Positions 1 to 22,600 of a stretch of DNA of 64,000 nucleotides are shown piece by piece (position 1 is the first letter of the stretch; each line of letters begins with the position of its first letter). The notes beneath the pieces are model-generated. The model saw only the letters and a list, made by a program, of their open reading frames with translations, had not been told where the DNA came from and did not search any database. The DNA is taken from positions 496,001 through 560,000 of the forward strand of contig CDRNST010000175.1 of assembly GCA_977016875.1 (NCBI GenBank), given 5' to 3'. Both the position numbers and the translations under genes were made by a program. The DNA comes from Pavona decussata (Eukaryota).

Positions 1-3000
1 CCAAGTGAGATCAGGCCTCCGTATGTAGTAAGTCACAAATGTTGAGTTTATTCACAAATGAGGTGGAGTCGACCCTTAATTCTTTCTTCTAACAACTACT
101 GCTTGTCGTTTTACTTTACAAACGATCAAGTTACTTTTTCTTATTAATTATTACTAATTTTTATTATTCTTTGTTTCCCTGATGCTATCGATTAAGAATT
201 TCTCTCAGTAAAGAAAAATGCGAAAACTTCCCCCTTGGAATAAAATGTGGCATAAAAACAAAAGAATTATTTATATATAACTGAAAAAAGTCGCGCATCA
301 GAAGCAGCTCTCGTCGCGTTTTATTTATTTATTTATTTATTGAGAACGAGCAATTATTGAAAGTTAAGACATGAATGACTTTCATATTTACTATCTTTCC
401 CTATTTTTTTTTTAGTTCCAAGCTTCTGTTGACGCAAATGGTGTTTATACAGGAATGCAACCACTTACAATGTAAGTTAAGTCCAGAAACGAAGAAATTT
501 GATTTCTTTTTTCACTATATCTTAGGTCATTTGAAAAGTCCATCGGCCCCAATCGAGGGGCATTTCTTTTTTATTTTCAAAAATACCAATATCCACCAGT
601 GAAGGCTTTTGGACAATGCCGGAAATGATTGATGCATAAGTTATCAAACACTATTTATGTCCAGTGTAATATGTCTTGGCTCCTTCGTGGCAGTTGGAAG
701 GTAACCTGCTAACATTTTCCTTTATTGTCACGCAGGCGGCCACGATGGATAACCAGATCAACTCAAACTCAGGCTGATGTTTCTGTTGCTGGGCAAGTTT
801 CATCTCAGGTATAACATTATGAATACATACATTATGTATGACAAACTCTACATAATATACTTCCGCTATCGATCCACTTTTCCTTCTCATTAAAGATGCA
901 TTTGTAAAGTTATTAAAATACACAAAAACTGTTCTCGACTCATACTGATCTTAATCACAAACTAACCCAATTAACAATATATTGAGAATTTAAAAAAGTG
1001 TTGTTCTTGTATTGTTTTAATACTTTCGATAATTTTTTTTTCTCTATTGATTTTTACTGTATGTACATTTTGTTGGTTTTCCTTTTTTTTTTGTTTAAAA
1101 GTATGTTCAACTTGTGTAACTATCCATTTCAGAATACCCACGAGGCTGCAGCAAAGCGGCAAGATTACAAAATCAAAACCCTTCAAGAACTGGTGATGTA
1201 AGTACATTAAAAGTTAGTTTCGCTACATTAGTCTTACTTTGCGTTTTGAAAAAATGAAAATGGCTGATCCTAACTAAGTGAAAATCAGATCGGGATTGTT
1301 TCGAAACGTTTTATCTCATTATGTAGTAAGTTTTACTTTAGGAAATTAAAAAGAAATATAAAAAATAATCGCGTCTTGACAATCAAAGGAAACTGAGTGA
1401 AACTGAGTGAAATCAAATTTGATGCCTGAAAATGAACAGGAGTGCAAAGCAAAGACAATGGGTAAAAGCTAAGACTCAGTTTTGTAGTGTACGTATTTTT
1501 ACGCATTGATTTATTTTGGTTAAGGTTTCTTTGGAACTTATCATGAATGTAATGAAGTATTGGGAAACATATGGAGAAAAAAATGATGATGAGAACAACA
1601 ATAGGAGTTAATATCTATTAGATTAGTTTCTGCCAGATAGTTTTGCGCTGAAGGTTAAATTCGAATTCTCTATGTCTTGTATTGGTCTAGTTAAAAGCAT
1701 GGTAGATACGATCTTATATATTTCTTTTTATCCACAGAGAATGGAAAGAGAAGCTGGAAAAAGAAAGAGAAGAGTATGCGTTGAAATTGAAGCAACAATC
1801 AAACAAAATCCAGGCTTTGGAGATGAAAGACAAGCAACACAAAAAGACGGTATGAAGTGAAAGTAATAAGATAATTTTACCTTAATAAAATGGTAAACTA
1901 GGATTTATGCCTGATTCTACTTGAAATATACCAACTCTTGTTTTTTTATGTGGTCCAACAAATGTGTGCTCCATTAAGTCTTAAATATAGACATTTGTTT
2001 TATGCCAGAATATTAACTAAAATTGGATTCTCTTGTGTTTATTTTATGCCCTTAGTAAAGATCTGTCGATCACCTCTCTCTCTGAGCTAATATATGTTTG
2101 GGAGGTGAGGGTGGGGGGGGGGGGATGTGGATGTAGGGAAAGGTCACCTCCCTTTAACTGAACAGTGTAAGAAAAGTATCGTATCTCTGAACTTGGTTTA
2201 AACGTTCCTACCGAAAATTACATTGGCGACCGTCAGATTTGTCAACGACTGAGAGATTGAGTGCGCGCGACTTCTCAAATCTAGTTTGCGTGCTTGTGTC
2301 TGCGGTCCTTTGTTTGCTGGTAAAAAACGGGAAAGAGAGAGGGTTCTGGGGATGTGACTGGTTTGAAATTGAGAGTGGACGTACTTGTACTCAGATTTGA
2401 ACGTCCATAATATCATTCCTGAGACGATTGAATAATCAACAACTATCTTACAGAAAGAAATCTCAGATTCAAACAAGTTTGCTTCGATCATGTTATGTCA
2501 GCTAGTCAGCAAGACAAAACGTTTTTTCTATTTTCACAGATGATGGAACAGACGGAAGCGAGAAAGATGGCCGAGGATATGTAAGACATTTTTTTTCTCT
2601 TTTCTTTTAATGAGCCTTATTTGCTCTTTCTGATGTTTGATTTTTTATGTATGACCTCAGATGATTGTGCGTATGGTGCTTGTCCTGTAAAAATGTTCAG
2701 ACGTTCTTTTCTTCCTGTGTAAAGGTGTAAAAAAACCAACGAGGAGAAACAGGCGTTAAATGCGATGATACAATCTATGGAGAAAGAGGGCTGCAAAGTT
2801 AACCGACTACTGAAGGTAAACAGTTTTGATAGATAAATCAACTGAAATTAGCTCATTCAATCAGCATGTCTTGATTTTTGGTTTGTCACTTGTAATAGAC
2901 AATTACTATGATTGTGTGCTTCTACCATTCTCGTGTAAAACAACAAAGGTTGATAATTTAAATCACCTGTTTCAACTAAATTTATGTTGAAAATATTTTT

Positions 3001-6000
3001 CGATGATTCCCCAAATCTTGTCTTTGTGATTAAACTAAACGCAGAAAAAATTAATATCCTATCAATAAAGAGTCTATTTTTCGAAATGAATCAATCAAGT
3101 TCTTTCTTTGTAGACAAAAGAAGCCGATTTGTGTAGAGCCGACAACCAAATTACCACCTTGAAGTCGGACTTCTCGGTTCTGTGGAAGGAAAAACTAGAA
3201 GCAAACGACGAAATTGCTGTTCTTAAGGTGGAGTGTAAAAAGGTGAGTAAAACCTTTAATGGTTTACCTATCGACATGAAATCTGAAAAGTTTGCGCAAT
3301 TCCGAAATCATCAATATACCCGAAATGACTAAATGAGTGAATAATGTAAAACAATAAAATGAAGAAAATGCATGTTTTGAGCGTTCTTTTGTCGAAGGGA
3401 GCAAAATTTAATGTCCTCAATACTACAAACAATAATGTGAATTCTCTTTTTGATTTGGACTGGTATCCGCTCGGATAGATGTGAAGAGGTACTCAACGAT
3501 AAACTGATGACGCGATTAAAACAAGATTCGGGGAAAAGAACTTAAGTCTGACGGCCAAGTGCGTCACTAGAGAAACGTACCTTTAAATACAGGTTTGACT
3601 GACTCACGCCTTCTTACACTGCCAGGACAAATAAACCAATCCTAATGTCTGCCTCGAGTTTCTCTTTCCTCAGAACTGAGATATCCGACTCCAAGGTAAA
3701 GTTTGTTGCACTGGATTTGGATATCACAGTTCTGAGAAGGGAACATAACATTCGTGCTAGGAGCGGACTGCCGAACTTTACTCACGCCTTGAGAAAACTG
3801 AGCAATTTCGATGCTTTCTTTGAGTTGATATTTAAAAAATTAGGTTTGAGCCGACATAGATTTATAAATAAAAAGAGGCAGTGATCAGTCGTAACAACAA
3901 TGGTTATTCCGTTTACACTTCTTTTAGAAAAAAGTGGGATAAATTTGTACTTAATTTCCTTTGCTAATACCATTTCCATCCATTACCGTGGGCAAAACCA
4001 TTTCTAAATATTCACGTCCACTAGAATAGTATTGTCTAGAATAAGAACAGTGGAACTCATGTCTAAAGTGACTTTATAACCAATGTTTTCCTTGTATCTT
4101 TTTTAATCAAGTTGGAAGACCTGGTGCGAGTCAAGACGATCAAGGAATCGTAAGTTAATTTCGCTTCGTTGAAAAAATGGTATAACGTAAGAGAATAAAA
4201 TCCCATAATCAATACTTTGTATTTTTTCAGGCTTATTTTTGCTTTTTTGTAATTCCATCTTGAGTAACTTAAAACATCACAGTAATGCGCGATCCACTAG
4301 CTAAACAAGAATCATGATATAATTCCATCATCTGCCAACATGCCTGTAAATTTTTGTTGCAATCGACTTCAGAAATTCAGAGATGTGACGGCTTAGTAGT
4401 AAACACCTACCAAGAAAATTTGGCTTCTGAATTTATTGAAGGCAAGATAAGGTAGGGTAGTACCTCCATGAAGAAATTCTTAAGCCAATTTCTGAGAAGG
4501 TGTTTTCTTGTAAATATTCTGAAGTCGATTCCGTTGAAACTTTATAGAATTGTAAAACTGTGCCCTCTGTCTTGGTACCTCGGGCAAAATTTTTTCCAAA
4601 ACGGACCTCCCGGCCGGTGAATAACATATATTTCTTTCTGCCTACTCAGTCAAGACATTAACAAACCATTGCCCTATTTTCATCAACAGAAATACTGAGA
4701 CAATAAAGGAGTTGGAAGATCAGGTAATTTTACAGTGTAATGTAACAAAGGCAAATGTTCCGATGATATTGACTTTGTTTACGGTCACTTCAAGTTAATG
4801 AATAACACGGAATATGTTTTAACTATGTTAAAGTAGCTTACTCTTACCATTTCTTGTTCAAAGCCATTCTTGTTATTATTGTCATGTGTTGTTACGTTGA
4901 TAGATAGAGAGAAGTAAACGATTTATTTACCATCGGTGGTAATATTGAACATAATATTAAATCATTTTTCCCTCGTAAATTTTAGGTCACCTTTTACAAG
5001 TCCGGTTACGAGAAAGCCACGAAAAAGTGAGTAAAATTAGTCTTGAAACCTTTTTAAAAATTTACGCCTAGTCTTGTGTAGGAGGTAAACTCCATGTTTT
5101 ACTCTTTCCCCCAGACATGCGCAAAAAGCTCTCAGGTTTAGAACAGGAGACTAGTTTATTCCATAAGGCATGAACATGCAGTAACCTGCAATTTTGTGAT
5201 TGCTGAATTCTAGAAACTTATGTAAGCTACCAAATTTAGCTTTCTATTATGTAAAACGTAATTAGTCCTCTACGGAAATTTCTAGAATTATGGAGTGAAA
5301 GTGTGTGCTGTAGACACACACGAATCTTCGCTTGGGAATACTTTGGTTACGCGAACGGTATCTTGACACCGTGTTGTCTACAACAAGAGCTATTGACAGC
5401 TAAATTTCTCTTCTTGTCAGTAGCCACTTATGGCTTTTCTGTAATGTTGATGCATATTCTCGAATCCACCGAGACCAGATTGGTATTGAAGAGCGTTGAG
5501 GGCTTTAAGGAATTAACCTTAAGATAATACTGAAATGAGCTTTCTTTGTAACTCAAGATAAAATCTCTTTTTCTAGGTTGAGCGAATCTAGTCAGGTGAA
5601 AGAGTCCCTCGCACAACAGTCTGACTCGTGTAGAAATAAATTTGAAAAGATCAAAGAGGAAAAAGACACGATTTGTGAACAGGCTGAAATAGAGAAGGCT
5701 GCTATGTCTAAAAAGATACAGACGCTGACAAACAAATGCTACAGAAAAGAAAAGATTATTGAGGTAAAGATGACAACTTGAGGAGTTAGCTTTATAATAA
5801 AATGGCGCAAATTGGAGTGGTTTATATTGAGAGCACAGCCGTGAGCCATTTTCAAGCTATCAGTCAAGACAGTTAAATTAAATTTCTTTGCAGTAAACAA
5901 TCCTTACCATCATTTCAATGTAGATAGTCTCTTGACAAGAGTCATAAGCGCCCAGAAGACTAATTTACGAACAACTTGAAACCACTGCTTCACGACTTGA

Positions 6001-8117: not shown

Positions 8118-10360
8118 AAACCACACACGCACAAAGAGGCAATGCAATTTCTTCATAAATGAGACTATTTAGAAAAAGAACCACTTCTTTGCCAATATGA
8201 TTCTGGTCCCGGTTTTTTTCCAGTCACATGTTAAATCTTCAAGGTTTTCCAAGATTGGTTTTGACTGTTATATTTTTGCCTTCAGTTTAAGAACTTTGGT
8301 TGTTAAATCTCAAAACGTTTTTGTCAGGGAAATATGATGTCATTCTTCTGCTATCCTTAGTTAGTTTATATACATATTTAATCTAATAGAGCGCTAGTTT
8401 AATTAGAGTCTTGTAGGACACTACTAAAATATTACTACTGAAAATTACAAGAATGAAGAATACAGAATAAACAGATATAGAAACTAACTTATAGCATGAA
8501 CTGCTGTCTAGCCTTGATAAAAGCGAATTAAATGCGCGAGCGCAGTTTATGCGAAAACTACTTGTAGTTTTCGGGTAAATCAGAAAACTGGGCGAAGCTT
8601 TTTGAAGATTTTGTTGTTTACAACAAGCAAGACGCGGCTAAATTAAAAACGTGAGCTTCTTCGGCGAACTTGAGAAAAACACTTTTCTGAACCGCTCTAA
8701 TCACTTAACGCAACTTCCACTACGCTTTGATTTAAATACAGTCATTGCAAACCTAGAGAACATGGGGTTAACTCGTGGTTGAGAATTAGCCCAAATTTAA
8801 CTGTTAGCTGAGAAATGGCAGTTTTTTAACTGATAGCTGAGAAATGTTAAGAAAACTGTTAGTTGAGATGTCTAAACTTTGTCTGAGTTTAGAGTAAATT
8901 TTATTTGTAATTACTGAACTTGCCGATAACTGTATAGAGAATAAACTGCAGACGAAAATCACTCGGAGCTAAATTGTTTGTAGAAGTCGTGAGGTCGTCA
9001 GAGGGCAGTGGTAAGCAATAGGTGTTTTCGCTTGGGAAAATCCGTGAACCGTTTTCATGTGTTGTTTTTTTGTGGGGGAGGGGGGGGGGGGTGGGGAATT
9101 CGAAAATAGATTTCAGATCCAAGAAATACCTCTCTCGAAATGAATTGTAGATTAATAAAAACATGTGAGAAGCAAAAGTTAAGGCAGATCCGTAAATAAT
9201 CTGATAGCTGAGATCTGGCCAAAAGTTTACCATTTCTTTCATTCTATCAGGCTGCAAACCGGAAATTGATCTTTATAAGTGTTCGTGCAGTTTTATACAG
9301 CAAAAGGGTTAAACACTTGGTGACCCTTTCACCTTATCAGTAGAGCATCAGCGGCAGAAACCTATATCCTTCATAAATAGTCGAAAGTTGGCATTTATAT
9401 CTCAGTCAATTTTAAACGTGAGCACCAACCCCCGTCCCCCGTCCCCCTTCTTTCCGGGCATTTGCTGGCCATTTTCTCTCCAGAGCAATGCAAATTCCCC
9501 ACGGTAGGGTCGGCCAATAAACCTAAAAACCCCACAGTACACGCTTAGAAGGTCTTAGAAAAGCGTCTAAAAAAGCGTCCACGGGACGAGACTAAAAATA
9601 AATTTTCTTGTAAACAAACAAAAAATTTGAATTGCAAACAGGAAAATAAATACAGTTAAAATGGTATTTTATTACCAAAAGAAGAACTTTTAACGTTACT
9701 TTACTCACGGCATTATAATTATGAATATCATTTTATAATTCATATGAAAAGAGCTGCCTTGTCCTTCTTACAGCTGTTCTTACTACAAAGAGGGTCGTAC
9801 AGGGGGGGTCTCTTGCACGGTTCACGAACAGAAAAAATAGCAAATCACGGATCACAGAAATGAAAATTTCGTTTTCAAGCTCTTCACGGGTCACGCAAAA
9901 CCTTCAGGTCACGGATTACGAAGACGCGCGGACCGTATGGCAGGTATTGGCCAAGAGAGTAGACCCACCACAAGTCCACTGGCCTTCAATGCTTAGTTGT
10001 TCAACGCATTCAACATCTATATATTAAGAATCAAGTCATAATCAGGATTAGCGCCTACAACGACGATACTGTGAAGATGACAGTGCCACTCGCGCCCGAA
10101 CCCGCTACAAAGTTCGGCAAACCTTCGTACTGCTGTGCATGTCTGATCGGCCGACACGAATTGGAGCTTCTGTGGTCACTCAACCGAAAATTACCCAAAA
10201 CTGGTACCCCCGGCATATGCATATATGCATCGATAATGATATCACCATAATTGTACTTGGCAAAATAAAAGAAACAAATGTTTATAAAGAACACTCTTTG
10301 TAAATTTAGCCTGGGAAATATAACTTTTAGGTGTAAAAGAAAGAAACCCGCCAACGGCCG

Positions 10361-10849
10361 GCCCGGGCAATTTTTTTTTTTTACGCCCACTTCAAGATGG
10401 CGGACAGTTACCGTGATAGACTGGTAACTAGCAAGTCAAGTAGAGTAACACAACATTACTTCCGGTAAATTCGCGATCGCTTTCGCGTGTTTCCATGGCT
10501 TCTCAAGACGTTGTTTTTACCTGTTTTTACACTGAGACACCAGACATCATTAGCGAAATGTAAATTTAATGAGCTGAGATCAATTAAAGTGCGGATAACC
10601 TTGTGAAGAATACTTCTCAAATCGCCTCCGAACATTTTTATAGTCTTTAGTGTATCGAGCCCCTTTCTACGGAAATCCAACCTCTACTACCTTTAAAAAA
10701 TATGTCTCGAACTTTTATAGTGTCACCATTCCTCGAGTGCAGTTCAAAGCTCAGATGACATTTTTCTGGTGGGCGTAAAACGAAATCGATTTTCATTTTA
10801 CGCCCACTTTTTGGGCCCGCGGAAACTAACGAGAAAACTGGGCATGAAA
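10361..10849 (+). repeat. Left terminal inverted repeat (~490 bp)
   Basis: Reverse complement of 16937-17425. Contains repeated TTTTACGCCCAC motifs, an internal palindrome GTGGGCGTAAAA...TTTTACGCCCAC, a YY1-type CAAGATGGCGG and an ETS-type ACTTCCGG. Confidence 0.92.
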
Positions 10850-10963
10850 GATTACAAGAAAAGGGACTTGAAATGAATTAAGACATAAATGTTGAACTCT
10901 GGAGAGTACAAGTTTGTACGGCTCGTTTCAATACGGACAGCTCCTTATACAGAGGGTAATCAA

Positions 10964-12651
10964 TGTTGGTTTTGAAACGTGATGTATTTTACTTCATTTT
11001 TTATTCTTTATTTTTGGATGATACTATGCTTTAGATATTACCGCGTAATTGTTCTTTTATCAATTACTGATTAGCGCTCACACCTTACCGGTGGTTGACT
11101 AGCCCATAGCTGCTATGTCCGTTAGGGAAATGCGAAAGTCTCTAGGTTTTTCTGCGCACGTACGCCTTTGTTAGATAAGCAAGCTTTCAATTCAGTTAGA
11201 TCAGTTCTGGTGTAGAGTCTACGGTGTCAACTACTACTACTCGGCAATCGGGCCACTCAACTCTATCTACACTGGTATCAGTCTTCTTTATTTAGTGCGT
11301 GTGCAAACCAAAGTGAGTACTGTCTTTTTCTTGTTTTTAGTTTTCTGTAATTCGGTTTATCGTTACTAGTTTCAGTCCTAGATTTTGTTCGTTATTAGAT
11401 TTTAGGAGTATCGTTGCCAATTTAGTTTTCGTATACTCGGAACGCTGTATTACTATTTTCGCTAGGTTTATATCATCAAGTAATTAGTTTTTATTGGTCG
11501 TAAACTGTTTAAGGATCGACTATCACTACATGCATGGTTTCTATCGTATTACTTCAATTTGTTACGCACTGTAGTAAGCTCAAGCATGTTAAGGCATGGC
11601 TCAAGGCCATATCTGGGTAAAAAATAGAAACAATTATAACTCTGCATAAATTTACTGAAAGACCATCAAACTTGGTAGCGACACAGAACTTGATGACCTT
11701 AACTCAATTCCACCCTCGCGACCTAAAAATAGATGTCACGTGACCGGTTATGATTGTTTCTTTGCTCAAACAGAAAATAGAAAATGGGGTGCCGAGTTTA
11801 CATATAATGAATATCGGTTAGAACGTTTCTCTTATTGCATGGTTATGCCTTATATGAATCTGTCCGGAATGGTTGACTCCAATATTTAGTTAACGGATTA
11901 TTTAACAAAATAGGTCACGTGACTTATTAAACTTCTTAATAACATTTTAATAAAACCAAAACCTATTCCATTCAGGACAGATTCAGTTTCTATATGATAT
12001 AAGTTACAAACACACATGCTATGCTCCGAGTCAGAATGAACCATTCTTGCCCCATCTGATAATTTCTTTTGAGCGCAATAGTGACGTCATCAAACACGTG
12101 ACCACTATTCTTATGCCCTAAGGAATCTAAAGTCGTTGTAATATGTCAATTACAAACTTATGGTCACTCTGGGTGATTAAAGAAACATCGATTTCAAGGA
12201 TAGGTGGTCATAAATTCGCGGGGGGTCTTAAGTAAAGAATGAACCATGCCTTAACATGCTTGAGAAGTGCAGATTAGTATCTTTTAGTTTCACATGTTAT
12301 TGTATTTTTTAATTGTTAGTCTATCTTAATTTTATGCTTATATGCGTTAGTTAGGTTCGGTTGTTTTTCATTATTGTATTTCAGTTCGAACCGACACATC
12401 GACACAACCGACATATCATATCGTCAAATTGTCAAATCGTTACTCTGCAAGTTCGCAACTGACACTCGTCTTAATCGCTACGTGACCTGTCTACCTCAGT
12501 TGAACTTTGTATGGAACATTGACCTGTCTATTAAACTTTGTTTGCGTTTTAGTCAGAGTTTCTTGTCGAGTTCGTTTTTTACGCTACGCACTACTCTACC
12601 CGTGTTATTCATTTGGATCTTTGGTTTGGCATTCTATCCTTGTGAATTACA
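10964..12651 (+). mobile_element. Solo LTR (~1.0 kb after removing the nested MITE), inserted inside the long-TIR element
   Basis: Starts TGTT (10964) and ends TTACA (12651). Flanked by the 5-bp direct repeat ATCAA (10959-10963 and 12652-12656). ATTAAA near 12530. No internal gag/pol. Confidence 0.65.
11579..12264. mobile_element. MITE (686 bp) nested in the solo LTR
   Basis: TIR CTCAAGCATGTTAAGGCATGG / CCATGCCTTAACATGCTTGAG, a perfect 21 bp. 3-bp flanking repeat AAG. Confidence 0.85.
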
Positions 12652-12904
12652 ATCAAGTGCAATCAAGGTATGCAAAAAGCAACCAATCAAAAAACTTGTA
12701 AATAGAAAATTGTGCATGTGTTTACATAGACTGATGCAGACACTTGAGGGAGTTCGGGTACCCCTTTGCCTTGCATAAACTTTCAAATTCTCCCAAACTC
12801 CCTCAAATGCTGTTTGTAATTGAATGTGTGTTCCTTTAACCTTGTTAATCACAGTCACATCCTCTTACTTGTGATTCTTTAAGCTCAACCACTTGCCTAA
12901 ATTG

Positions 12905-13586
12905 TTAACACTTTCCAGAATTTTGCTGATTTTTTGCAATGTTACTTGCAAGATCATGCTTTCTTTTCTGTACCTTTGGTCGTTTCCTGACACGAAAATT
13001 ATCTAAGACTAAACCGATCAAATTCATCACTGTCATTGCCCTCATCCTCAGCCTTTCATGTAAATGGTTTTGGAGGTCAGTCTGCTCGAGTTTTCTTCAT
13101 CCTTCAGGAAATCCCCTTTCTTCTCTGGCCTGTTACTGTAGATTGCACCTAGCTTTCTTCTTTTTCCAATCCTTTTTTTTTTTTTGGTTGTAGTCTGGAA
13201 TCTGTTAAGGTGACGGCTTGCAAAAGTATGTAGCGCAGACGCAATTCCAGGTATCACGCTACAGGTACTCCCTTCTTTGAGTTTTTCATACCTTGAAACA
13301 AACTAGCTGACTCCCACAATAAAATTTTCATCCCCACTCTTTAATTTTGAAACAATGTCATTGCACACTTCATAGACCTTTGTCTAAAGACCTTCTGCTA
13401 TGGGGTGGATTGGATGCATTTCATCAATACTGTCAACTTGACTGCTGTTGTCTGTAATGTCTGTTGGGCCTAGTGATGGTGTGGTTAAATCTAATGAACA
13501 TTGGGGTCAAGCACTGATTGTCCATTGAAGCAGACTCCATTTTGAGTTGCTTCCTCTTCCACATTTTTCTGGTGTACACCGTCTGC
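12905..13586 (-). pseudogene. Degenerate C-terminal exon of a probable MULE/SWIM-type transposase
   Basis: Acceptor at 13586. Reads ...VCNDIVSKLKSGDENFIVGVS*FVSRYEKL...IASALHTFA...(frameshift)VQSTVTGQRRKGIS...PPKP...RKRPKVQKRKHDLASNIAKNQQNSGKC*. From memory this resembles the C-terminal tail of invertebrate SWIM/MULE-domain proteins. It has stops and frameshifts, and no DDE core is visible. Confidence 0.55.
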
Positions 13587-13988
13587 CTGCTAATAACTAA
13601 CAAAGTAATCAATGCTGGCTGTTATTCTGATCTTGTTTCTAACTTGTCACCCCCCTTTGGAACCCACAATAACTATATAACTGTATAATTTGGAATTTTA
13701 TTGCATCGCTTGCAAGATGAAGTGAATCCTGTGCTCTGATTGGCTACTCGCCTGATCAAGATGGAGCCATCTTGCCCACTTAGGATTACCTGTTACCCGT
13801 TTACTCATGGATGCATATAATAAATCTTTTTATGGCCAAGCTTAGGTCAAGATGGCAGGATATTGGCCTTGTTCTATTGTTGGCAAAATTATTGATCGTC
13901 CTGTCCCTAAATTGTACCGATGCCCCCCCCCCTCCCCAAGCCCCTCACCCCCTACACACACGCACATCTTTTTAGGCTGGGATCCCTC

Positions 13989-16244
13989 CTAAAGGCTAAT
14001 CTCTTTTGTTTCACAATTATTTTGAAGGACGTAAAAAGAAGATAAGCCTCTCGCCCAAGAGCTTCGTTATGTGATACACAAGAAACCTGCAAAAAAATGT
14101 AAAAGTAAGAAACTGTATGTATGGCTTTAACATACCACTTCATCATTCATACAGAACCACCTCTGGTCCACCTTGCAGTAGCTATAATGGTGGCCACATT
14201 TGCACTTAGTACCACTTTGTACAACAACACTTTGCAACTCGTACATATTGCTGTTCTATGTAAGCAAAAAATTATAGTATAAACAATTAGAGAAGGCGTA
14301 ATCTTAACTATTTCTATAGTTGTGTACCCTTTCTTAGATAAACATTTAAATGGTAATACAGTGGAACCTCTCAAATACTGGTAAAGGCAACCTCCTATTT
14401 AATGTCAGGAAAAGTGGTTGGCTAAAAGAAGTGGTCACTGTCAGAGAGCCTGCAGACTGTAATGTTGTTAATTCTAACCTGAATCAATTTCTATAAATGG
14501 GGATGGATATGGCAAGTGGAAGTTGTGGGAAACATGAACAGAAGGCAAGTGTTTCATCAGCTAGTGGCCTGTTTCAGGTTATCCCAAAACTTTCACAAAT
14601 GTTACCATGGAAATAAGGAAAGTATGAATTTATACATCTTTTCTATAGAGTTACAGTTAAGCAACCAACCAAAATAAATACAAGGGAGTATTTCTTTCAA
14701 GCTGTTGGTAGGACTGCTGTAAATTATTGGTCAGTGGTGTTGCACATGGGAACGAGTGTGAGTTGTGTGTAAAAAACATGGCCGACAGCCTGAATAAAGT
14801 ATGATCGTTGTGTTAGCCAAGTTGTTCCTGTTCATACCTGTATCAGCTGGTCAACAAAGCTAAGTGGACTATTTCATCACTTTTCCTTTTTGAATGTCAA
14901 CCCAGTTTATTTGTAGAGATCAAAATTACTACAATCAAACTTCCCATAAGTGAACACCTCCCATAAGCGGACCAAGCACAGGTGTCTGCTTTTGAGAGGT
15001 GTCCACTTACGGGAGCTGTGCATTGGCGGAGGGTCAACTATAATACTAGTATTCTTAAAATAAAGCTATATACCGGTAATGATAGTACAGACAATAATTA
15101 GGGTATGTCACTACTTACAGCTTTTTCTAACAAAATTATATTTTACTTTCTTATTGTATCAAAAATAATTATACCTTTGATGGCTCATTCAATAGTAAGT
15201 AGTCAAACCATGCAGGGTATATCAATTTCTTCCTCAATTTGTTAATTCCTGTTCTCTCAAATCTGCAATATATTATTGCAAATATCAGGGAAAAAAGGAT
15301 CCCTTGTCTTTAGAGTTCAGGTATTAAATACAAGAAGCTAAGACAAAAATCTCCACAAAATTATGTAACTTTCAAAACCAATTCTTCGAAATAAACCTAC
15401 CTTTTTAAATGGAATGTGAGGACTTTGGGCCATTTACCAACAAATTGGTCTTTCTCAGCCCTGGTCAGCTCATTACACCTGTGTACAACACCAAGCACAA
15501 TAGGTATTGTGGGCACACGCAAACACAATCTAATATGATCTCTGTGAGACATATTGCAAATTCATGACTTCCTAACCTTTCGCAGAAGCATCGATTGTCC
15601 CCATCAAGAATTTTGGTCATATTTGTGCAAACAGTAACTACATTTTAATATTAACAATTTATTCAATTTTCTTATTTACAAAAACGTTTCCTATCATGGC
15701 CTCTTAACCATCACCATACATAGTCAAATGGAATTATCTTTTCTTATTATAAAATAGGGGTCCTCCCAATCACTGGTTGAAGCACTTGATAATATACAGA
15801 CAAAAATTCTTGATGATTGACACAAATCCTTTATGCATAGCCCATCATTGTTGATTACTGTGCTTTGCTATAACATGCCAAATCCGAAATTGAAATCACT
15901 GCCGACAGTTGCATTTTTCGCTACCGTCAATGACTGCACTGGAAGCTTTAGAAACAAAGTAACAGGATCAATAGGTCACGCTCGTGCAGTGCATGGTGAT
16001 TGGTGGATTTTGATCCACTTTGTTTGATTGACGGCAGGAAAAAATGCAACCATCTGCTCATGCAGTGTTTTGTATTTCAGATTCCACCTGTTATTGAAAA
16101 GTGCAAGTTAACTGTTACATCTACCTGTATGTCGATACTGTTATTTAACATGGTGATTGTTCTGCTGCTGACATGTTGGCACATTGTACACTTTACTGAA
16201 GTGGAGAATAAAATAGCATATTTGGAGATATTGACTTTGTTTAT
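13989..16244 (-). pseudogene. Spliced ubiquitin-specific protease (USP/UCH, peptidase C19) catalytic-domain gene, decaying, inside the transposon
   Basis: GT-AG exons 16244-16125 (FSTSVKCTMCQHVSSRT), 15637-15577 (ILDGDNRCFCER), 15478-15401 (CNELTRAEK...WPKVLTFHLKR), 15262-15175 (FERTGINKLRKKLIYP), 14255-14136 (YELQSVVVQSGTKCKCGHHYSYCKVDQRWFCMNDEV) and 14086-13989 (VSCVSHNEALGREAYLLF, 1-nt deletion before Y). The last five splice in frame. Both finger CxxC pairs, HLKRF, the His box and AYLLFY are in USP order. Cys box not found. Confidence 0.88.
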
Positions 16245-16936
16245 CTGTGCAAAATTACTACTGTCACATACCTCATGCAAACATGGGCACTATTATTTTT
16301 GTTTGTTATAGTAACTAGAATACTTCTCAATGGGAAGCCTACTACTAGTTAGCCCACTAGGGGTCAAATCCTCCACCCTGCCACTATCTGGACTTTTCTT
16401 CCATAGTCTCAAATTCAACTACTCTACAGTTTGTAAATAGCCCTCATTGGTCAGCATCCCGCCAGTTGGTTATAACATGGTGCTGGAAAGTCATTAGGGG
16501 CAGCCATGATTCACATTTGTGGCATTAATTTATTCATTTATTGTTATTATTTTTTTGATCATTATTTTTTATTTCTGTATTATTTTAATAATTGCATGTA
16601 TACAAACCTGTACTGGTTAGCTCTCCTCCAATTTCTTCATGGAAGTGAGAGGCACCACTAAAAACAGACCACCAGCCTTAAATGGAAGTGTATCGTTACT
16701 CTATAAAGTATTGGTTTAATCATGTTTTATGTCTAGCTGTGTAAGGTACAGCTTTACTGACACTCACTTGTCAACTGATAACGCCATGTCCAATCGATCG
16801 CACAGAAAACTAGTGTAAACAGAGAAATAGACGAATTTTCCACGAGTGTGACAAATTACCGCGAAATGAAAACAATTTTGCCGCCAAAACTTACATATCT
16901 CTTAGTTACCAGCTTCCCAACGAACGATCGCACTTT

Positions 16937-17425
16937 TTTCATGCCCAGTTTCTTCGTTAGTTTCCGCGGGCCCAAAAAGTGGGCGTAAAATGAAAATCGA
17001 TTTCGTTTTACGCCCACCAGAAAAATGTCTTCTGAGCTTTGAACTGTACTCAAGGAATGGTGACACTATAAAAGTTCGAGACATATTTTTTAAAGGTAGT
17101 AGAGGTTGGGTTTCCTTTGAAAGGGGCTCGATACACTAAAGACTATAAAAATGTTCGGAGGCGATTTGAGAAGTATTCTTCACAAGGTTATCCGCACTTT
17201 AATTGATCTCAGCTTATTAAAGTTACATTTCGCTAATGATGTCTGGTGTCTCAGTGTAAAAACAGGTAAGAACAACGTCTTGAGAAGCCGTGGAAACACG
17301 CGAAAGCGATCGCGAATTTACCGGAAGTAATGTTGTGTTACTCTACTTGACTTGCTAGTTACCAGTCTATCACGGTAACTGTCCGCCATCTTGAAGTGGG
17401 CGTAAAAAAAACACAATTGCCCGGC
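16937..17425 (-). repeat. Right terminal inverted repeat (~490 bp), immediately upstream of the LRR gene
   Basis: Reverse complement of 10361-10849. The element ends at 17430, 156 bp before the ATG at 17587. Confidence 0.92.
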
Positions 17426-17586
17426 CCGGGAGAAACCCCATAGCAGGGAATCGTGAGGAATGGTACATGAAGGCCTATTGAGGAGACCCCTAAGGGGAAG
17501 GAATGTGGAAACTGAAATGTAGTTAGCCATGATATCTTGAGGCGATTGTTTTCAAAGCTTAATGCCGGGATTTCAAGGCGACAAAC

Positions 17587-19594
17587 ATGTCCAAATCGCT
17601 GGCAGACCTATGCATGTTCTGCATCGCAAAAAATCTTCAAAATATCAATCGTGTGGGGACCTTCTTATCCAAAAATGACAACGAAGTTCTACTGGAATTG
17701 CTTTGTGATCATGACATGTTTACGGCAAGCAATCTGCCGCATATAACTTACCATCTTCTCTCATCTCGGCTCGAAAACATTGCTTTTCGTTACAGTCGTC
17801 AAGTGAATGACACCCTGCTACAGAACGTGGCTCACTGCGGTTGTAAACTCAAGTCTTTCATACTTAAGGATTGCCCCCAGGTGTCAGGTGAGGTTAATTC
17901 ATTGGAATCCTATAAACCCGACGATACCAGTCAATGATAGATCAATAATAAATATAATCATGCAATGATGATCAGTAGTAATCAAATTAATTAATTGATT
18001 AATATTGGAAATTAATAAAAATCGAATCTGGATGTTAAGTGATTTTCGATTTTCATTGATTTCCTTTGATAATTTTTCATTGATTTTGATTGCTATGGTA
18101 AATTAAAATCTGTTGTTTTTTAGACCCCGTTCACACGTATCCAGATATTTTTGAATCCGCAACTTTTTCTTTCCGGATACGAACAAATCCGCGTCCACAC
18201 GTTATGTGATCAGAGTGTATTCAAATCGAATTCGCCCGTCCACACGTATTCGCATTTACTCTGGATTTACTCTAGCACCTAGGACTACTTGCATAACAAC
18301 ATCTACCGGGGCACGCGTTACTGTTGTCTTGCCTTCAATATATGGTCGTAGCTCATTAGCTAATTCATAAAGGGAGCCCTGCTCCTCTGGAAATTCTCCC
18401 GCCATTCCTCTGCGATCACGATCTGATTGACAAAATTGTCCCAGCAGGGGCTGGTTCGTCCAGGTCTAACCCAGAATCATCAAGGACGGCATAGCTTTCC
18501 TGTTCGTTTAAGTTGTTTCTGCTGGCCGTTTTGTTCGGTAGACAACGTAAAGAGCTTGCAGATGTCAAGCCGCCTTCTGGCATAACCTATGTCAGCATTT
18601 AGTAGAGCGACATTTAGCTGCATACAAGCTAAAAGACTGGAAATAAGCCCAAGGAGCACAAAAGCTATTTGCCTTCGATCGGCGGCCATAATTAAATTTG
18701 CGCGGTAAACACTGGCGCCAATTTTGCGATGTCATCGTATCAGAAAATATCCGGATTCGACCGTCCACACGTATCTGAAATGTTATCAGATTCAAAAATT
18801 TCCACTCTGGAGAGCGGATTTCAAAAATTTCTGGATTTGCTTGCGAATTCACCGGATGCGTGTGGACAATAGCTGTATCTGGAAAGAAAAAGTTGTGGAT
18901 TCAAAAATATCCAGATACGTGTGGACGGGGTCTTACACACATCACATGATTTACAAAATATTCCCATTAAAGTTTAACTTTTCTGATGTATGATAAAAAG
19001 TAAAGTACAAAAGAAACAACAGTAATGGCAACATTTTGTTGTGTTTGCTGTATTGGCAACAGGCATGTCAGAACTACTTTAAATACCTTAGATGTTTTTT
19101 TGTCAGCAATGATGGAATGTTCATCATAGAGAGGTCAGTATGATATTAATAATAGAGTGTTTAAGCATGATGTTATACGTGAGCTCACGTTTGTTTGCTT
19201 TTCTCAATTTCTTAGATAAATCAATCAGAAAAGCTGAAAAAATCACACGTTCATGAGTACCCAAACCTGCTCATTTCCATGTACAAAAAGCAGACAGCAT
19301 ACTTTAATAAATTCTCGCTATTCACAAGAAAAATGCCATTCTGGCAGAATCCCTGCCAGCAGATTAAATTAAATTATTTTTTAATGTCAAGGTGTTCTTT
19401 ATAAATTAACACTTGATAATTTTAGGTATGATTTTATTCGTAACTTGGATTTTAGATAGAATACACGGCTCAATGGAAGAGCATATCTTATTTATATATG
19501 TGAATTGATACCATGTTTAAAGAAGGTGCCTACTAATACAGAAGTATTTTTGCACAGTTTATGACTATGCAGGGAAAGCAGATTTTAGCAAGGG

Positions 19595-19625
<31 letters not shown>

Positions 19626-22600
19626 ACCACGCAATTTTCAGAGATAATTAAGCAACAATTATTCTAAAAAGCAGAAAAATATAAAGCAATGTATGGCATT
19701 TTTTCCCCAAAATAATTGAAACTCTATTATCTCTGAAAAATGCATTGTTACCCCAAATTTTCTTTTTGGATACCAAGAGTACTTGCTAAGTTCTGCTTTC
19801 TGCACATATTAACCGCGCAAAAAATACGTCTGTATTGGTAGGCGCCACCCATAGAAAACCCGAGTATCTCGAGATGTGTATAACGTATGCGCAATAACAA
19901 AAGTAGGCACTGTCCTTAAATAAAGCTATGACTGACTGACTGACCCGACATACATAATCTCTGAATGAAATATAAACTTTCTCTGGGGCTGTTACAATAA
20001 AAAATTTATTAAGTGTCCCACTACGACAGATTTTACAAAAAGCTAATTCAGCTAAAACATTTTAGAATCAAAGTTTTAACCCTGTGATTTTAAAAATCAG
20101 CAATTTTGATAATCCTAAGAAACTGGAACAGGAAGAAAATATTTGTCCATCCTATCGTGAAGGTTATTGTTTAGACATAGTGCTGTTTAATCAAGTAGAT
20201 GCCTTTAAAGCCAGAATCATGCAAATACAGACCTTGTTATTCTGTTACTGATACTGGCTCAAAACAGAGCTGCTGTGTATTTATGAATGTGAATGTATGA
20301 AATTCATATAATTGTTTGATTTGGGAATGAATGAATGAATAAGTGAGAGACATTCAAACCAGAATCAAGACTTTCAGGTTGTTCTCATTTTCATAAAATG
20401 TTATTCCCATTTCATGGGGCAAAAAGAATCTTTTTTCTTTTTACCCATTTAACTCCCCCTCCCATGCCCATTTGTGAGCCTATCTGCTACCCCTGGCACA
20501 TATAAGCCCACATATATACAGTAGTTTTTTTAAGTTAACAAGGAACCAAACAAGTTTAAAGCTGTGTTTCTTTCCTAAAAAAAATTGACAGTGGCCTCCA
20601 GTAATATGCAGATTATTGTTTACAGATTTGTGTAAAACCCATGAGACTTGTCCAGATGAAGACAGGACAGGAGTGTCGTGTTTTTCATAAAGTCATAAAT
20701 TAATCATTGTGTAATTTGCTTTTTCATGCACCTTTGCTTTCAGCTGTGTATTCAAAGCGAATTACCATGTGATTACTATTCTTTTCACAAACATATGTAC
20801 CATTGGAACTAATTTCAACAAATGAATTTCAACTTGCAGTCACACTAAATAGTCTCATTGTTGATTATACTTGGGGTAGACCTGAGCATTGTTTACTAAT
20901 ATTATAGACAGATTTAATAAAACAACCATTTTAAGGACATGAGAGGACCGACAACAAGCTAAAATTCTTTGATTGTTTATGCTACATTATTAATGGGTTG
21001 GCCAACAAAAGTGCTATCACATGGTTCAGTTGCCAAAATGTATGTGTTCAGTGTGTGAAACAGGCTTAACAAAGCCATTTCAGAAGGAATCTGGTGTCAC
21101 TTATAGTAACTCACTTGTTTCCAAAATCAGTTATTAAAATTGTCTCAAGGAAAGTGTGACATTGTAGAATGTAGTAACATTTACTTATTATTAGTGTATA
21201 ATTTTGTGATTACAGACACCAATCACATAACATCATGTCACATCACATGATATGACAAGCCAAAGATCGTCTGTACGTAGGAGGCTAATCATGTTCTGGA
21301 GATGTCTAAGTTTTATAGTTAGGTGTTGACTATAGTAATCAGCCTAATTTATACCAGTAGTTAAAAAATTTGTGATAATTTTGACATAATTTGAATGTCT
21401 TGATCATTGTTGTTGTTGTTGTTTCTTAGATAAGGGGTTGTCTTCCCTTCTTAAGACTCAAACAGAGTTGGAACTTTTTCACCTCAAATTGGGCTCCACT
21501 CACATCAACCTAACTGACAAGTGTTTGACAACGCTGCACTCTCTAAAATTAACATCAGTTAAACTTGAAAGTCTTGACCAAGTCACCAACAATGGAATTA
21601 TCACCTTGGCCAAGAACTGCCCCAGTATCTGTGAACTAATGGTCCCACGATGCAATTTACTTACTGATGGCTGCTTTCAAACTGTTACAACACTTTTAAA
21701 AGGAGGATTGGTGAGTTGGCATTATTTTGTGTTTTTTCTTATGATTCAAAAATAAATTTGATACAACCAAAACCATGTCCCCAGAATTTTCTCGGTGTTG
21801 CTTTTCAAGGTGGGGGTGGGAGAAAGTCTTGGTGAGGGCCTGATTACATGGAAAAAGAAATTTCAGAAACCTTGGACGTTTTTTATCATGTGATCTTGCT
21901 ACAAAAATGGAACCTAAACTTTGGCATGCATTTCCAACCTTATTCCAGGGTTTTTTTTTTCCATATTTATTATGGCAAGGTCACAAGAAAACATTTCTAT
22001 CATTTTTTGGAGATTTTTTACCAAATGACCTAGCTGCTAGCCTTAACAGAAGTTTCTCCCAACCTGCTGCCAGCCTTTTTGCTGCCGTGTATGCTACAGA
22101 AGGGATGATCAGTATTCCCCTGTCATCAGTTGAGCACCAACCTCACTGTGATTGCAAGATGTTAGACTCAATATCAGCTATCAGGGTGGTGGATACTGAT
22201 GATTGTGACTTTCAGCACTCCTCAGCTGCCTTCTTTCCCATCTTCTTGGTAGTTACCAACCTATCTCCACCCCTGCCAAGGCCCATATTGATAGCAGTTG
22301 TATATAAACTGAGGTGGTTACCCTGTCCCCTGTCTTAATACATCTTCATTGGTTGCCTGTTTCATACCGGATCATGTTTAAGCATGTTCTATTTGTTTAT
22401 AAATCATTGAATGGTCTTTGCCGGCAATATCTAATGGAACTCCTCGAACATCGGAAATCAACTCCGTCTCTTTGCTTGAACTCTCAAGACCGACTAATGC
22501 AGCCAACTTGTAAAACCAAGACATATGGGGCTTTCTCTGTTTGCACCCCAAAGCTTTGGAACACTGTTCCTTTGGAAATACGACGTTCCAGTACACTTTT

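Follow-up and report, generated by a model that had tools for sequence, protein, structure and literature searches.

A recently mobile Mutator-type transposon family of Pavona decussata that carries a truncated ubiquitin-specific protease gene and probably derives from a lineage with its own protease and transposase

In the genome of Pavona decussata, a spliced ubiquitin-specific protease (USP) gene lies on the minus strand between long terminal inverted repeats (TIRs). Did this gene belong to the transposon itself, or was it taken from the host? An earlier note on the same DNA regarded the locus as a decayed copy of a transposon family encoding its own deubiquitinase, with a one-off capture of the Pack-MULE type as the alternative. 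In the present study, we analysed a stretch of 64,000 nucleotides (the window; contig CDRNST010000175.1, positions 496,001 to 560,000) together with the family copies and related elements. The copies, the related element L056 and the link to a transposase tail support the former reading: the window element is probably (roughly 0.75) a non-autonomous Mutator-like element (MULE) derivative, formed by internal deletion, of a lineage with its own USP and transposase.

The element spans 10367-17420 of the window. Its parts other than the exons are as follows.

10358-10366: left target-site duplication (TSD), CCGGCCCGG, identical to 17421-17429
10367-10849, plus strand: left TIR, terminus 5'-GCAATTTTTTTTTTTACGCCCACTTCAAGATGGCGG, also present in L056
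10964-12650: nested insertion of 1.69 kb, private to the window copy, with a 6-bp duplication (AATCAA) and without TIR; outside the family sequence
12651-13951, minus strand: family-specific region 3' of the USP stop codon, present only in family copies, bar a short repeat
13126-13377, minus strand: decayed MULE-type transposase C-terminal (SWIM-side) remnant, matching L057:16365-17054
15602-15815: segment of 214 bp in the opposite orientation to most copies, flanked by inverted repeats of 13-17 bp, with 'opposite strands' contig joints
16937-17420, minus strand: right TIR
17421-17429: right TSD, CCGGCCCGG, 9 bp

MULEs duplicate 8-11 bp of the target, typically 9, and have long TIRs (tens to hundreds of bp), but long TIRs are not exclusive to them. 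Here the TSD is 9 bp and the arms, as aligned (10360-10849 and 16937-17426), are 490 nt long and 96% complementary, in agreement with the TIR length of about 490 bp given in the earlier note. The flanking repeat described there, AGAAACCC, is indeed present on both sides (10342-10349 and 17431-17438), but we rejected it as the TSD in favour of CCGGCCCGG. Perfect or near-perfect 9-bp TSDs, each its own, were found in 13 independent copies, and the TSD of one further copy was read by eye only. Copies insert at the consensus CC-N5-GG with 9-bp duplications. A TSD of 5 bp was ruled out, because L038, L039, and L041 depart from CC-N5-GG alike on both sides. Short inverted repeats occur within the 490-bp unit, and many MITE-sized elements share its terminal 75 bp.

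The family has at least 21 copies in the 602-Mb genome. Many TIR-bounded copies with the USP had been proposed as a check, and the genome search gave 56 TIR ends, paired in inverted orientation with a spacing of about 5.35 kb; we retrieved at least 17 full copies, and the His-box exon was found in 21 copies. The whole interior is common to 17 of the 17 retrieved copies, and the minus-strand USP gene is the same in every family copy. L032, L034, and L035 are 2-3 substitutions apart across 4.8 kb and have different flanks and TSDs; therefore, the family moved very recently. The window copy is a dead member of this Mutator-type family. An autonomous element with the exact TIRs of the family was not found in this assembly.

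The exons of the USP gene in the window copy, all with GT-AG introns, are listed below with the joints observed in contigs of public runs. These runs came from three studies; they are presumed to be RNA, a label that is a guess, and the sides of the joints are short (26-30 nt).

16787-16768, minus strand: exon 1, ATG, MALSVD; a 62-nt deletion took the Cys box; joint to exon X not seen in the RNA contigs
16657-16608, minus strand: exon X, GASHFHEEIGGELTST; X|A joint, and acceptor used at 16657
16195-16125, minus strand: exon A, VKCTMCQHVSS..., first CxxC of the zinc ribbon; X|A joint in two runs
15617-15577, minus strand: exon B, TKILDGDNRCFCER, LDGDNRCFCER; acceptor lost in the window copy; B|C joint
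15478-15401, minus strand: exon C, CNELTRAEKDQFVGKWPKVLTFHLKR, WPKVLTFHLKR; B|C and C|D joints
15262-15175, minus strand: exon D, FERTGINKLRKKLIYPAWFD..., KKLIYP; C|D and D|E joints
14255-14136, minus strand: exon E, His box and Asp/Asn box; D|E joint
14086-13952, minus strand: exon F, VSCVSHNEALGREAYLLF..., AYLLF, stop TAG; acceptor used in a contig joint

The joints at X|A, B|C, C|D, and D|E are exact GT-AG joints, and exon-skipped forms are also present. The truncated USP gene of the family is still transcribed and spliced, the runs being presumed RNA. The six minus-strand exons of the earlier note stand, exon X having been overlooked, and its candidate first exon (ATG 16787) is kept as exon 1 apart from the joint to exon X.

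Exon E matches PF00443 at positions 196-235 (E 2.6e-8; 34.2 bits versus the Pfam cut-off of 23.9), and thus holds the His box and the Asp/Asn box of peptidase C19, with the GHHY and ND motifs kept and a private H-to-Q change (VVQSG). Its best match among solved structures is USP36 (E 1.5e-5). The thumb is missing from the family: no exon corresponds to PF00443 positions of about 21-95, and just about 110 nt lie between exons 1 and X, so that the domain is not a complete thumb-palm-fingers domain. By these motifs the USP is of the C19 type, a predicted ubiquitin hydrolase.

The window copy has no Cys box (GNTC), as had been noticed, because of the 62-nt deletion in exon 1, which is shared by its subfamily. 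The sister subfamily, B, retains the box (MALSGLINIGNTCFVNS; PF00443 positions 2-20, E 0.0035) in an exon 1 of 82 nt whose frame does not continue into exon X. The frameshift reported between exons A and B has its source in the 214-bp inversion, which removes a phase-0 acceptor present in other copies and occurs otherwise only in L031 and L033. In exon F, the window copy lost 1 nt after LLF, and its frame is shifted relative to the AYLLFY of subfamily B and L056. Exon F shifts are found in both subfamilies, and the frame-breaking lesions differ between them. In most subfamily-A copies, one frame runs from the ATG to exon E (20+50+71+41+78+88+120 = 468 nt).

L056, on a second scaffold, has a terminus identical to that of the window family for 35 bp. 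Its Cys-box exon, with a significant match to PF00443 (positions 1-42, E 8e-8), lies 647 nt inward of the terminus, versus about 633 nt from one TIR end for the start codon of the window family. Beyond the Cys box, L056 has the same exon series plus a QQDAHE thumb exon; thumb-like exons including AQQDAHEL lie in an interval of about 1 kb, with weak tblastn matches only. The termini (84-87%) and exons (74-78%) are the only alignable parts; the introns cannot be aligned. Comparison of the exons gave a pS of 0.70 and a pN of 0.20 (dN/dS about 0.11), which shows that the USP exons of the parent lineage were kept under strong purifying selection. Within the window family, exon divergence (2.0%) is close to intron divergence (2.3%), the shared variants are 18 nonsynonymous and 6 synonymous, the data reject an omega of 0.2 (P < 0.004), and dN/dS is about 1: the gene evolves neutrally. 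A dN/dS below 1, anticipated among copies, thus holds between the element lineages and not among the family copies. Because L056 has the same terminus and exon series, dN/dS between the two types is about 0.1, and drift within the family is neutral, the family is probably a derivative of a USP-carrying MULE lineage and not the product of a one-off host capture.

Exon-peptide searches of this genome matched family copies, a decayed relic at C195, and host USPs only. Host USPs are at most about 42-48% identical to any cargo exon, with none above 42% for the His-box exon, as expected of a transposon-specific USP; for exon C the best non-family match (49%) is the decayed relic. No host parent unlinked to transposons was found with the exon peptides in this genome. 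The C195 relic is 14 kb away from a related terminus, and its side and orientation both fit. The USP36/USP42/USP17-type host deubiquitinases have the same order of motifs (Cys box, QQDAHE, two CxxC pairs, KRF, His box, and AY.LFY); here, in contrast, the gene is inside TIRs, is without the thumb in the window family, and shows only the above identity to host exons.

Downstream of the USP gene, the window copy contains the transposase remnant, as the earlier note had suspected, and so do all other family copies. Window positions 13377-13126 match L057:16365-17054 (55% amino acid identity over 85 residues, E 3e-19), and in subfamily B the homology reaches further upstream, to about window position 13590. 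The matched open reading frame, from a metagenome contig with a fuller USP gene upstream of it, represents the C-terminal portion of a MULE-like transposase. Pfam called MULE or SWIM neither on the remnant nor on the L057 pieces, and hmmscan gave no PF04434 (SWIM) match; the link to MULEs is made through L057 as an intermediate, and it consists of colinearity with PF10551 loci and a lead from the ESM Atlas. Among the homologs of the L057 frame in this genome, outside the family and the two USP-linked loci C392 and C20, 12 of 13 follow a PF10551 MULE match on the same strand at a distance of 1.1-2.4 kb. Two pieces upstream in the decayed L057 gene match the MULE core start and the core-to-tail stretch, so that L057 is colinear with these loci over core start, post-core, and tail. 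A SWIM-type zinc finger after the MULE core is common, not universal; the closest Atlas clusters contain SWIM (score 0.95, 198 shared features), and L057 shows a C...CKH motif.

The MURA-type DDE core (PF10551) is absent from every family copy, and no PF10551 or IS1595 (Merlin) match adjoins a terminal-motif match in the genome. Merlin/IS1595 elements (TSD of 8-9 bp) were rejected: none of the 36 PF12762 matches in the genome is near the terminal motif, and the tails that the remnant matches are MULE-linked. In L055/L057, the USP exons and the transposase share one strand and follow the order seen in the window, with a gap of about 13 kb that contains nested elements; a second terminus was not found there. 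From the matching order and strand, we infer that they form one element. An open frame of 1647 codons in C392 spans the three transposase pieces as well as a portion of a UCH match. This UCH match has two stops, and the transposase section shares only 29-41% identity with its L057 counterpart.

The proposed ancestor would be a MULE whose coding region comprised an N-terminal USP (peptidase C19) and a MULE transposase. The family, as its probable internal deletion derivative, still has both TIRs of 490 bp, the start codon, the USP exons for fingers and palm, and the final 90-180 codons of the transposase; the thumb exons and the DDE core are gone, as is the Cys box in the window's subfamily. 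Copies were probably mobilised in trans by transposase made elsewhere, with the truncated USP as a likely passenger. By analogy with the Ulp1 and OTU proteases carried by other transposons, the protease of the parent lineage may serve its transposon, perhaps by removing ubiquitin from the transposase, or from chromatin and repair factors where transposition takes place. No Mutator element pairing a USP domain with a transposase was found described in the literature searched.

MULEs with a Ulp1 (C48) protease, namely KI-MULE/KAONASHI, CUMULE-type MULEs, and MuDR elements of hydra and lancelet, have been reviewed (PMC2836005). Like the window family, they are Mutator-type, with long TIRs, 9-bp-class TSDs, a cysteine protease of the ubiquitin/SUMO system, and many non-autonomous or decayed copies; here, however, the protease is a USP (C19, PF00443), encoded on the transposase strand and either N-terminal to the transposase or upstream of it. 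A deubiquitinase-type domain is also stably carried at a fixed position by Helentron/Helitron2 elements (UCH; HELIANO, PMC11417382) and by Helitron or Ginger1 elements (OTU). Those elements are of the rolling-circle Rep/helicase type or integrase-like and lack a 9-bp TSD, whereas ours, with its MULE-type tail, is a TIR element of the cut-and-paste kind. A Trichomonas vaginalis protein, XP_001314237.1, is cited (PMC2836005) as an IS4/IS5-type transposase fused to peptidase C19, and so likewise links a C19 ubiquitin hydrolase domain with a DDE transposase; it differs in its transposase superfamily (pfam01609) and protist host, and is a single reported protein with no characterised element family.

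It is unlikely that a non-autonomous TIR element captured a host USP fragment once and then amplified it, the USP never having been the transposon's. Pack-MULEs of plants and Pack-TIRs of animals resemble our family as multicopy non-autonomous TIR elements with a gene-derived interior that is transcribed, in some cases as chimeras (PMC8277862). Capture would accommodate the lack of a transposase core in any copy, the introns retained in the cargo, its truncation and neutrality among copies, and the chimeric transcripts known for Pack-TIRs (PMC8277862), but not the missing host parent, nor a remnant of the transposase itself behind the cargo, nor the C195 relic near a related terminus. L056 also has this gene at a matching distance from the shared terminus (633 versus 647 nt), with unalignable introns and the low dN/dS. 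The interior thus appears to be the lineage's own decayed USP plus a transposase tail; moreover, no Pack-MULEs were found in 100 animal genomes (PMC8277862).

Similarly doubtful is a function for the truncated product of about 190 codons, as a catalytically dead ubiquitin binder, a regulator of the autonomous element, or a nascent host gene family, for which Ssk-FB4 would be a precedent (PMC8277862). Correct splicing in the presumed RNA runs and the 468-nt frame are consistent with it, whereas the equal divergence of exons and introns, the 18:6 ratio of shared variants, the subfamily-specific frame lesions, and a domain without thumb and with the Cys box missing or off-frame argue against it. 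That there is no transposon at all, only independent insertions of the 490-bp repeat or a local inverted duplication around a host USP gene, might be suggested by the inverted repeats in this unit and its MITE-shared end, but is refuted by at least 17 loci with both arms, the same 4.4-kb interior, their own 9-bp TSDs, and unrelated flanks. A small unrelated repeat lies at about 13712-13884, inside the family 3' region.

The copy in the window is of interest for the lineage to which it points. We give somewhat better than even odds (about 0.55) to a Mutator-type (MULE) lineage that carries a genuine USP (C19) domain within or directly upstream of its transposase, in which selection has long kept this domain (its synonymous sites are saturated), and that is still mobile in this genome. 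The window family is probably an internal-deletion, non-autonomous derivative of a MULE lineage in which a USP domain is encoded together with the transposase, and the family copies are probably moved in trans. The earlier note had proposed a transposon lineage with its own deubiquitinase, and our results support that main interpretation.

Ulp1 is carried by MULEs, Ginger, and Zisupton, OTU by Helitrons and Ginger, and UCH by Helentrons, all as independent acquisitions. We found no MULE with a USP in the literature, which was covered without most subscription journals and Repbase Reports; cases already on record are MULEs with Ulp1; Helitrons, Ginger1, and one hydra MuDR with OTU; an IS5-type transposase with a C19 domain, in Trichomonas (PMC2836005); and Helentrons with UCH (PMC11417382). 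No USP is listed in a survey of MULE diversity, and no Pack-MULE was found in a survey of 100 animal genomes (PMC8277862). One proposal is that domains of the Ulp1, OTU, and C19 types connect transposition with ubiquitin/SUMO-regulated repair (Bao et al., PMC2836005); for the present element, we can only infer a role of the protease.

The inverted repeat reported at the element ends is real: the arms at 10360-10849 and 16937-17426 are 490 nt long with 96% complementarity. Direct reading of the ends and comparison with 17 other copies placed the termini of the window copy at 10367 and 17420, and the terminal sequence of the family is 5'-GCAATTTTTTTTTTTACGCCCACTTCAAGATGGCGG. The target-site duplication (TSD) of this copy is the 9-bp CCGGCCCGG, at 10358-10366 and 17421-17429. 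The earlier note had taken AGAAACCC (10342-10349 and 17431-17438) as the flanking duplication; we rejected it, as it lies outside the true 9-bp duplication. The two copies of AGAAACCC flank the insertion and, in the reconstructed empty site, would stand on either side of CCGGCCCGG with 18 bp between them; they could be a coincidence, a short repeat of the host, or what an older element with an 8-bp TSD left behind. Thirteen independent copies have their own 9-bp duplication, perfect or with one mismatch, and comparison of these TSDs gave a target preference of CC-N5-GG. In three family copies (L038, L039, and L041), the duplications are off this pattern, yet the same 9 letters are found on both sides; thus, the TSD is truly 9 bp and not 5. 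The terminal 75 bp of the family TIR is common to many MITE-like elements of 250-400 bp throughout the genome, and a run of same-strand copies was seen on contig C122 (1.00-1.13 Mb). Examples of the MITE-sized elements are as follows.

C177:122603-122856, MITE-sized element with the family terminal 75 bp
C233:1782362-1782661, MITE-sized element with the family terminal 75 bp
C436:3617782-3618119, MITE-sized element with the family terminal 75 bp

On many contigs, the TIR was found as inverted pairs with a spacing of about 5.35 kb, and the terminal 32-mer had 56 matches in the genome against 0 for the reversed control. The whole interior (window 12651-16936), with every USP exon, is common to all fetched copies; the His-box exon was found in 21 copies and the 3' region in about 23. 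The window copy measures 7054 bp, lengthened by a private 1.69-kb insertion (10964-12650; 1,687 bp) with a 6-bp duplication, AATCAA, no TIR, and no long ORF. The family falls into two subfamilies, A (the window type) and B (L042-L046), with identities, gaps ignored, of 97-100% within each and 94-96.5% between them. We dropped a labeling of the two as 'old' and 'young', since the low BLAST identities were due to indels and both are 97-100% identical internally. L032, L034, and L035 are 2-3 substitutions apart in 4.8 kb and have unrelated flanks and different TSDs. Therefore, transposition was very recent, and hence a working transposase source existed; because near-identical derivative copies stand at different sites, we regard the lineage as still mobile in the Pavona decussata genome. 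L036 and L037, which have common flanks, are a segmental duplicate. The extra DNA in L039, L040, and L047 was considered as a candidate transposase and rejected, as it consists of nested foreign elements (Harbinger-like, GIY-YIG-like, or with no long ORF). A short repeat of about 90-170 bp (window ~13712-13884) lies inside the family 3' region and had 347 first-look candidates in other parts of the genome. A pair of inverted repeats a short way downstream of the element (18108-18180 and 18875-18947; 73 nt, 86%, 694 nt apart) looks like a MITE.

Direct reading of the minus strand gave a gene model of eight GT-AG exons, which confirmed the spliced USP gene of the earlier note and added one exon (exX).

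16787-16768, minus strand, ex1, MALSVD
16657-16608, minus strand, exX, GASHFHEEIGGELTST, absent from the earlier note
16195-16125, minus strand, exA, first CxxC, VKCTMC
15617-15577, minus strand, exB, LDGDNRCFCER
15478-15401, minus strand, exC, WPKVLTFHLKR
15262-15175, minus strand, exD, KKLIYP
14255-14136, minus strand, exE, His box
14086-13952, minus strand, exF, AYLLF and stop

The USP pattern GG-L-S-VKC-C is formed by exX together with exA. By itself, exE scores above the Pfam UCH cut-off (E 2.6e-8), and its nearest solved relative is USP36. All searches were run exon by exon, never with the joined protein, and dN/dS was calculated from the sum of per-exon counts.

In most copies of subfamily A, the exon lengths hold a single frame from the ATG through exE. 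The frameshift described previously corresponds to a real lesion, but the lesion is a 214-bp inversion (15602-15815) between inverted repeats of 13-17 bp, which takes away the phase-0 acceptor of exB; it is present in the window copy, L031, and L033 as compared with all other copies. Either a single inversion occurred in a master copy or the segment is prone to flipping. The window copy has no Cys box, as had been noted, the box having been lost from subfamily A through a 62-nt deletion. Subfamily B kept it: exon 1 is 82 nt long there and reads MALSGLINIGNTCFVNS..., a USP Cys box (PF00443 positions 2-20, E 0.0035), and is out of frame with exX. In both subfamilies, the spacing from exon 1 to exX is just about 110 nt; thus, the USP thumb (roughly PF00443 positions 21-95) is absent. 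Small frame shifts in exF are found in both subfamilies at different places. Under this splice model, no copy of the family can encode a complete catalytic domain, and the window copy is inactivated by several lesions at once: loss of the Cys box and of the thumb by deletion, the inversion, the nested insertion, and a His-box change from H to Q.

Differences among the copies were counted with the majority state of each column as the reference. The divergence was 2.0% in exons, 2.3% in introns, and 2.5% in the TIR, and the shared variants comprised 18 nonsynonymous and 6 synonymous changes, which fits an omega near 1 and rejects an omega of 0.2. Because the exons diverge as the introns and TIR do, and because of the 18:6 ratio, the USP gene is a drifting passenger within the window family.

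Contigs of four public sequencing runs, from four studies, were placed on window 13900-16950. Spliced joints were found in three of the four (X1, X5, and X9), with exact joints, 26-30 nt on their sides, at X|A (two runs), B|C, C|D, and D|E; the skipped parts end in CT..AC, the minus-strand equivalent of GT..AG. Forms that skip exons (X>C and D>F) were present as well, and the ex1|exX junction was not seen in the contigs of the four runs. As genome searches with exon peptides found no intron-less copy of the gene, the joined contigs are spliced RNAs, for data that consist of contigs from runs labeled RNA only as a guess. In one X1 contig, a foreign upstream sequence, which matches C165:19896-19925, on a contig with no known family copy, is joined to the exX acceptor (16657); this could be a chimeric transcript, an insertion missing from the reference, or an assembly artefact. 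In an X9 contig with a loose end at window 14033, the open frame runs on past AYLLFY. The extension matches no examined locus and may derive from a more complete relative present in the sample.

The origin of the USP was sought outside the family. No close host gene was found in the genome; the best non-family match to exE was 42%, and that to exC was 49%, the latter in a decayed relic on contig C195. An exhaustive protein search with the His-box exon gave host-type USPs and short fragments only, including the 91-aa P0006, which sits on a 752-kb metagenome contig (L055). P0035, a relative of P0006, led to L056, a 5.3-kb Tara metagenome scaffold that gave the deciding evidence. The terminus of L056 matches that of the family, is identical for 35 bp, and is preceded by a GC-rich 9-mer; a second match is to the inner TIR. 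At 647 nt inward (633 nt in the window), L056 has a Cys-box exon above the Pfam cut-off (positions 1-42, E 8e-8), and the next exons carry FCIVC and AQQDAHEL (thumb). Homologs of exX, A, B, C, D, E, and F then follow, ending in AYVLFY. Only the termini (84-87%) and the exons (74-78%) are alignable between L056 and the window family; summed over exons, pS was 0.70 and pN 0.20, giving a dN/dS of about 0.11. The relic on C195 belongs to the L056 type, and its side and strand relative to a related terminus are those expected. Because the same gene occupies the same place by the same terminus and silent sites are saturated, these comparisons indicate that the USP was inherited and selected as part of the element and not recently captured. 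Since L056 comes from a Tara metagenome, a cnidarian is the probable host of the USP-MULE lineage.

The C195 relic stands in a mosaic of other elements, among them ORFs for a YqaJ-like exonuclease and an OTU-like protease and a fragment of a reverse transcriptase. The positions in the mosaic are as follows.

L052:2600-3313
L054:243-1370
L054:1984-2364

A locus on contig C334, the best UCH match of the genome and 14 kb from a terminal motif, was rejected as an unrelated host-type USP with a terminus match of only 60 bp. On L055, two large same-strand ORFs (908-3613 and 3955-5415; 901 and 486 aa) stand upstream of the USP exons and have motifs such as GDNND...H.T and DHEEADTR. We rejected them as part of the USP element, as they have no Pfam match and no homolog in the examined loci; they probably belong to another, unclassified transposon.

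The link to a transposase came from L057, the extended L055 contig, in which a series of frame-shifted pieces (15036-17054) was found downstream of the USP exons, in the same orientation. The piece at 16365-17054 (229 aa) matches window 13377-13126 at 55% over 85 aa (E 3e-19) and aligns with subfamily B over 181 aa; the transposase C-terminal remnant claimed in the earlier note thus stands. A view that the remnant was unsupported (no Pfam match; pieces within 12637-13621) was reversed by this alignment and by the colinearity with MULEs. Homologs of the piece in the genome are the family copies, 13 further loci, and USP-linked loci on contigs C392 and C20. All but one of the 13 lie 1.1-2.4 kb downstream of a PF10551 MULE match on the same strand, and the two upstream L057 pieces match the same loci, at the PF10551 start and between the core and the tail. 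Because all three pieces map in order onto PF10551 loci, L057:15471-17054 is colinear with MULE transposases. The decayed pieces were unscored in a Pfam scan, and the nearest ESM Atlas clusters carry SWIM. The best genome match to all three pieces (29-41%) is a stop-free frame of 1647 codons on C392 (~143.0-147.9 kb), which also holds part of a UCH match that includes two stops; C20 is a decayed twin of this locus. In the genome, neither PF10551 nor IS1595/Merlin (PF12762) was found beside terminal-motif matches, and hence no partner element was found. Contig C227, the sole near case of a terminus with a transposase, was rejected for its wrong orientation.

If the proposed lineage is real, a third protease class (USP/C19) would be tied to the MULE transposase, and deubiquitination would be a component that the cut-and-paste cycle has acquired repeatedly and independently (Ulp1, OTU, and now USP). 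The lineage would, in addition, offer a live system for testing the role of the protease. Useful in this respect are protease exons under clear long-term purifying selection (dN/dS ~0.1), a natural 'deletion series' (L056 with the full gene, and derivatives with and without the Cys box in the Pavona decussata genome), and signs that transposition was very recent; with all three, it becomes testable whether the transposase needs its own deubiquitinase. There is also a risk in annotation: if the family is not recognized, some 20 fragmentary genes for a 'ubiquitin carboxyl-terminal hydrolase' will be called from it.

On L057, a zf-C17orf113 ORF (PF25431, E 3.7e-8) was found at 18372-18923, and downstream on the same strand (19740-20171), the gene table of the contig gives a weak FAM200/ZBED5 RNase-like match that our own Pfam scan did not reproduce. 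These ORFs point to a hAT/Buster-type transposase at the place expected for the USP-MULE 3' terminus. On contig C209, outside the USP family, terminal motifs at 889156 (+) and ~900762-900782 (-) face each other 11.6 kb apart and mark a candidate large relative.
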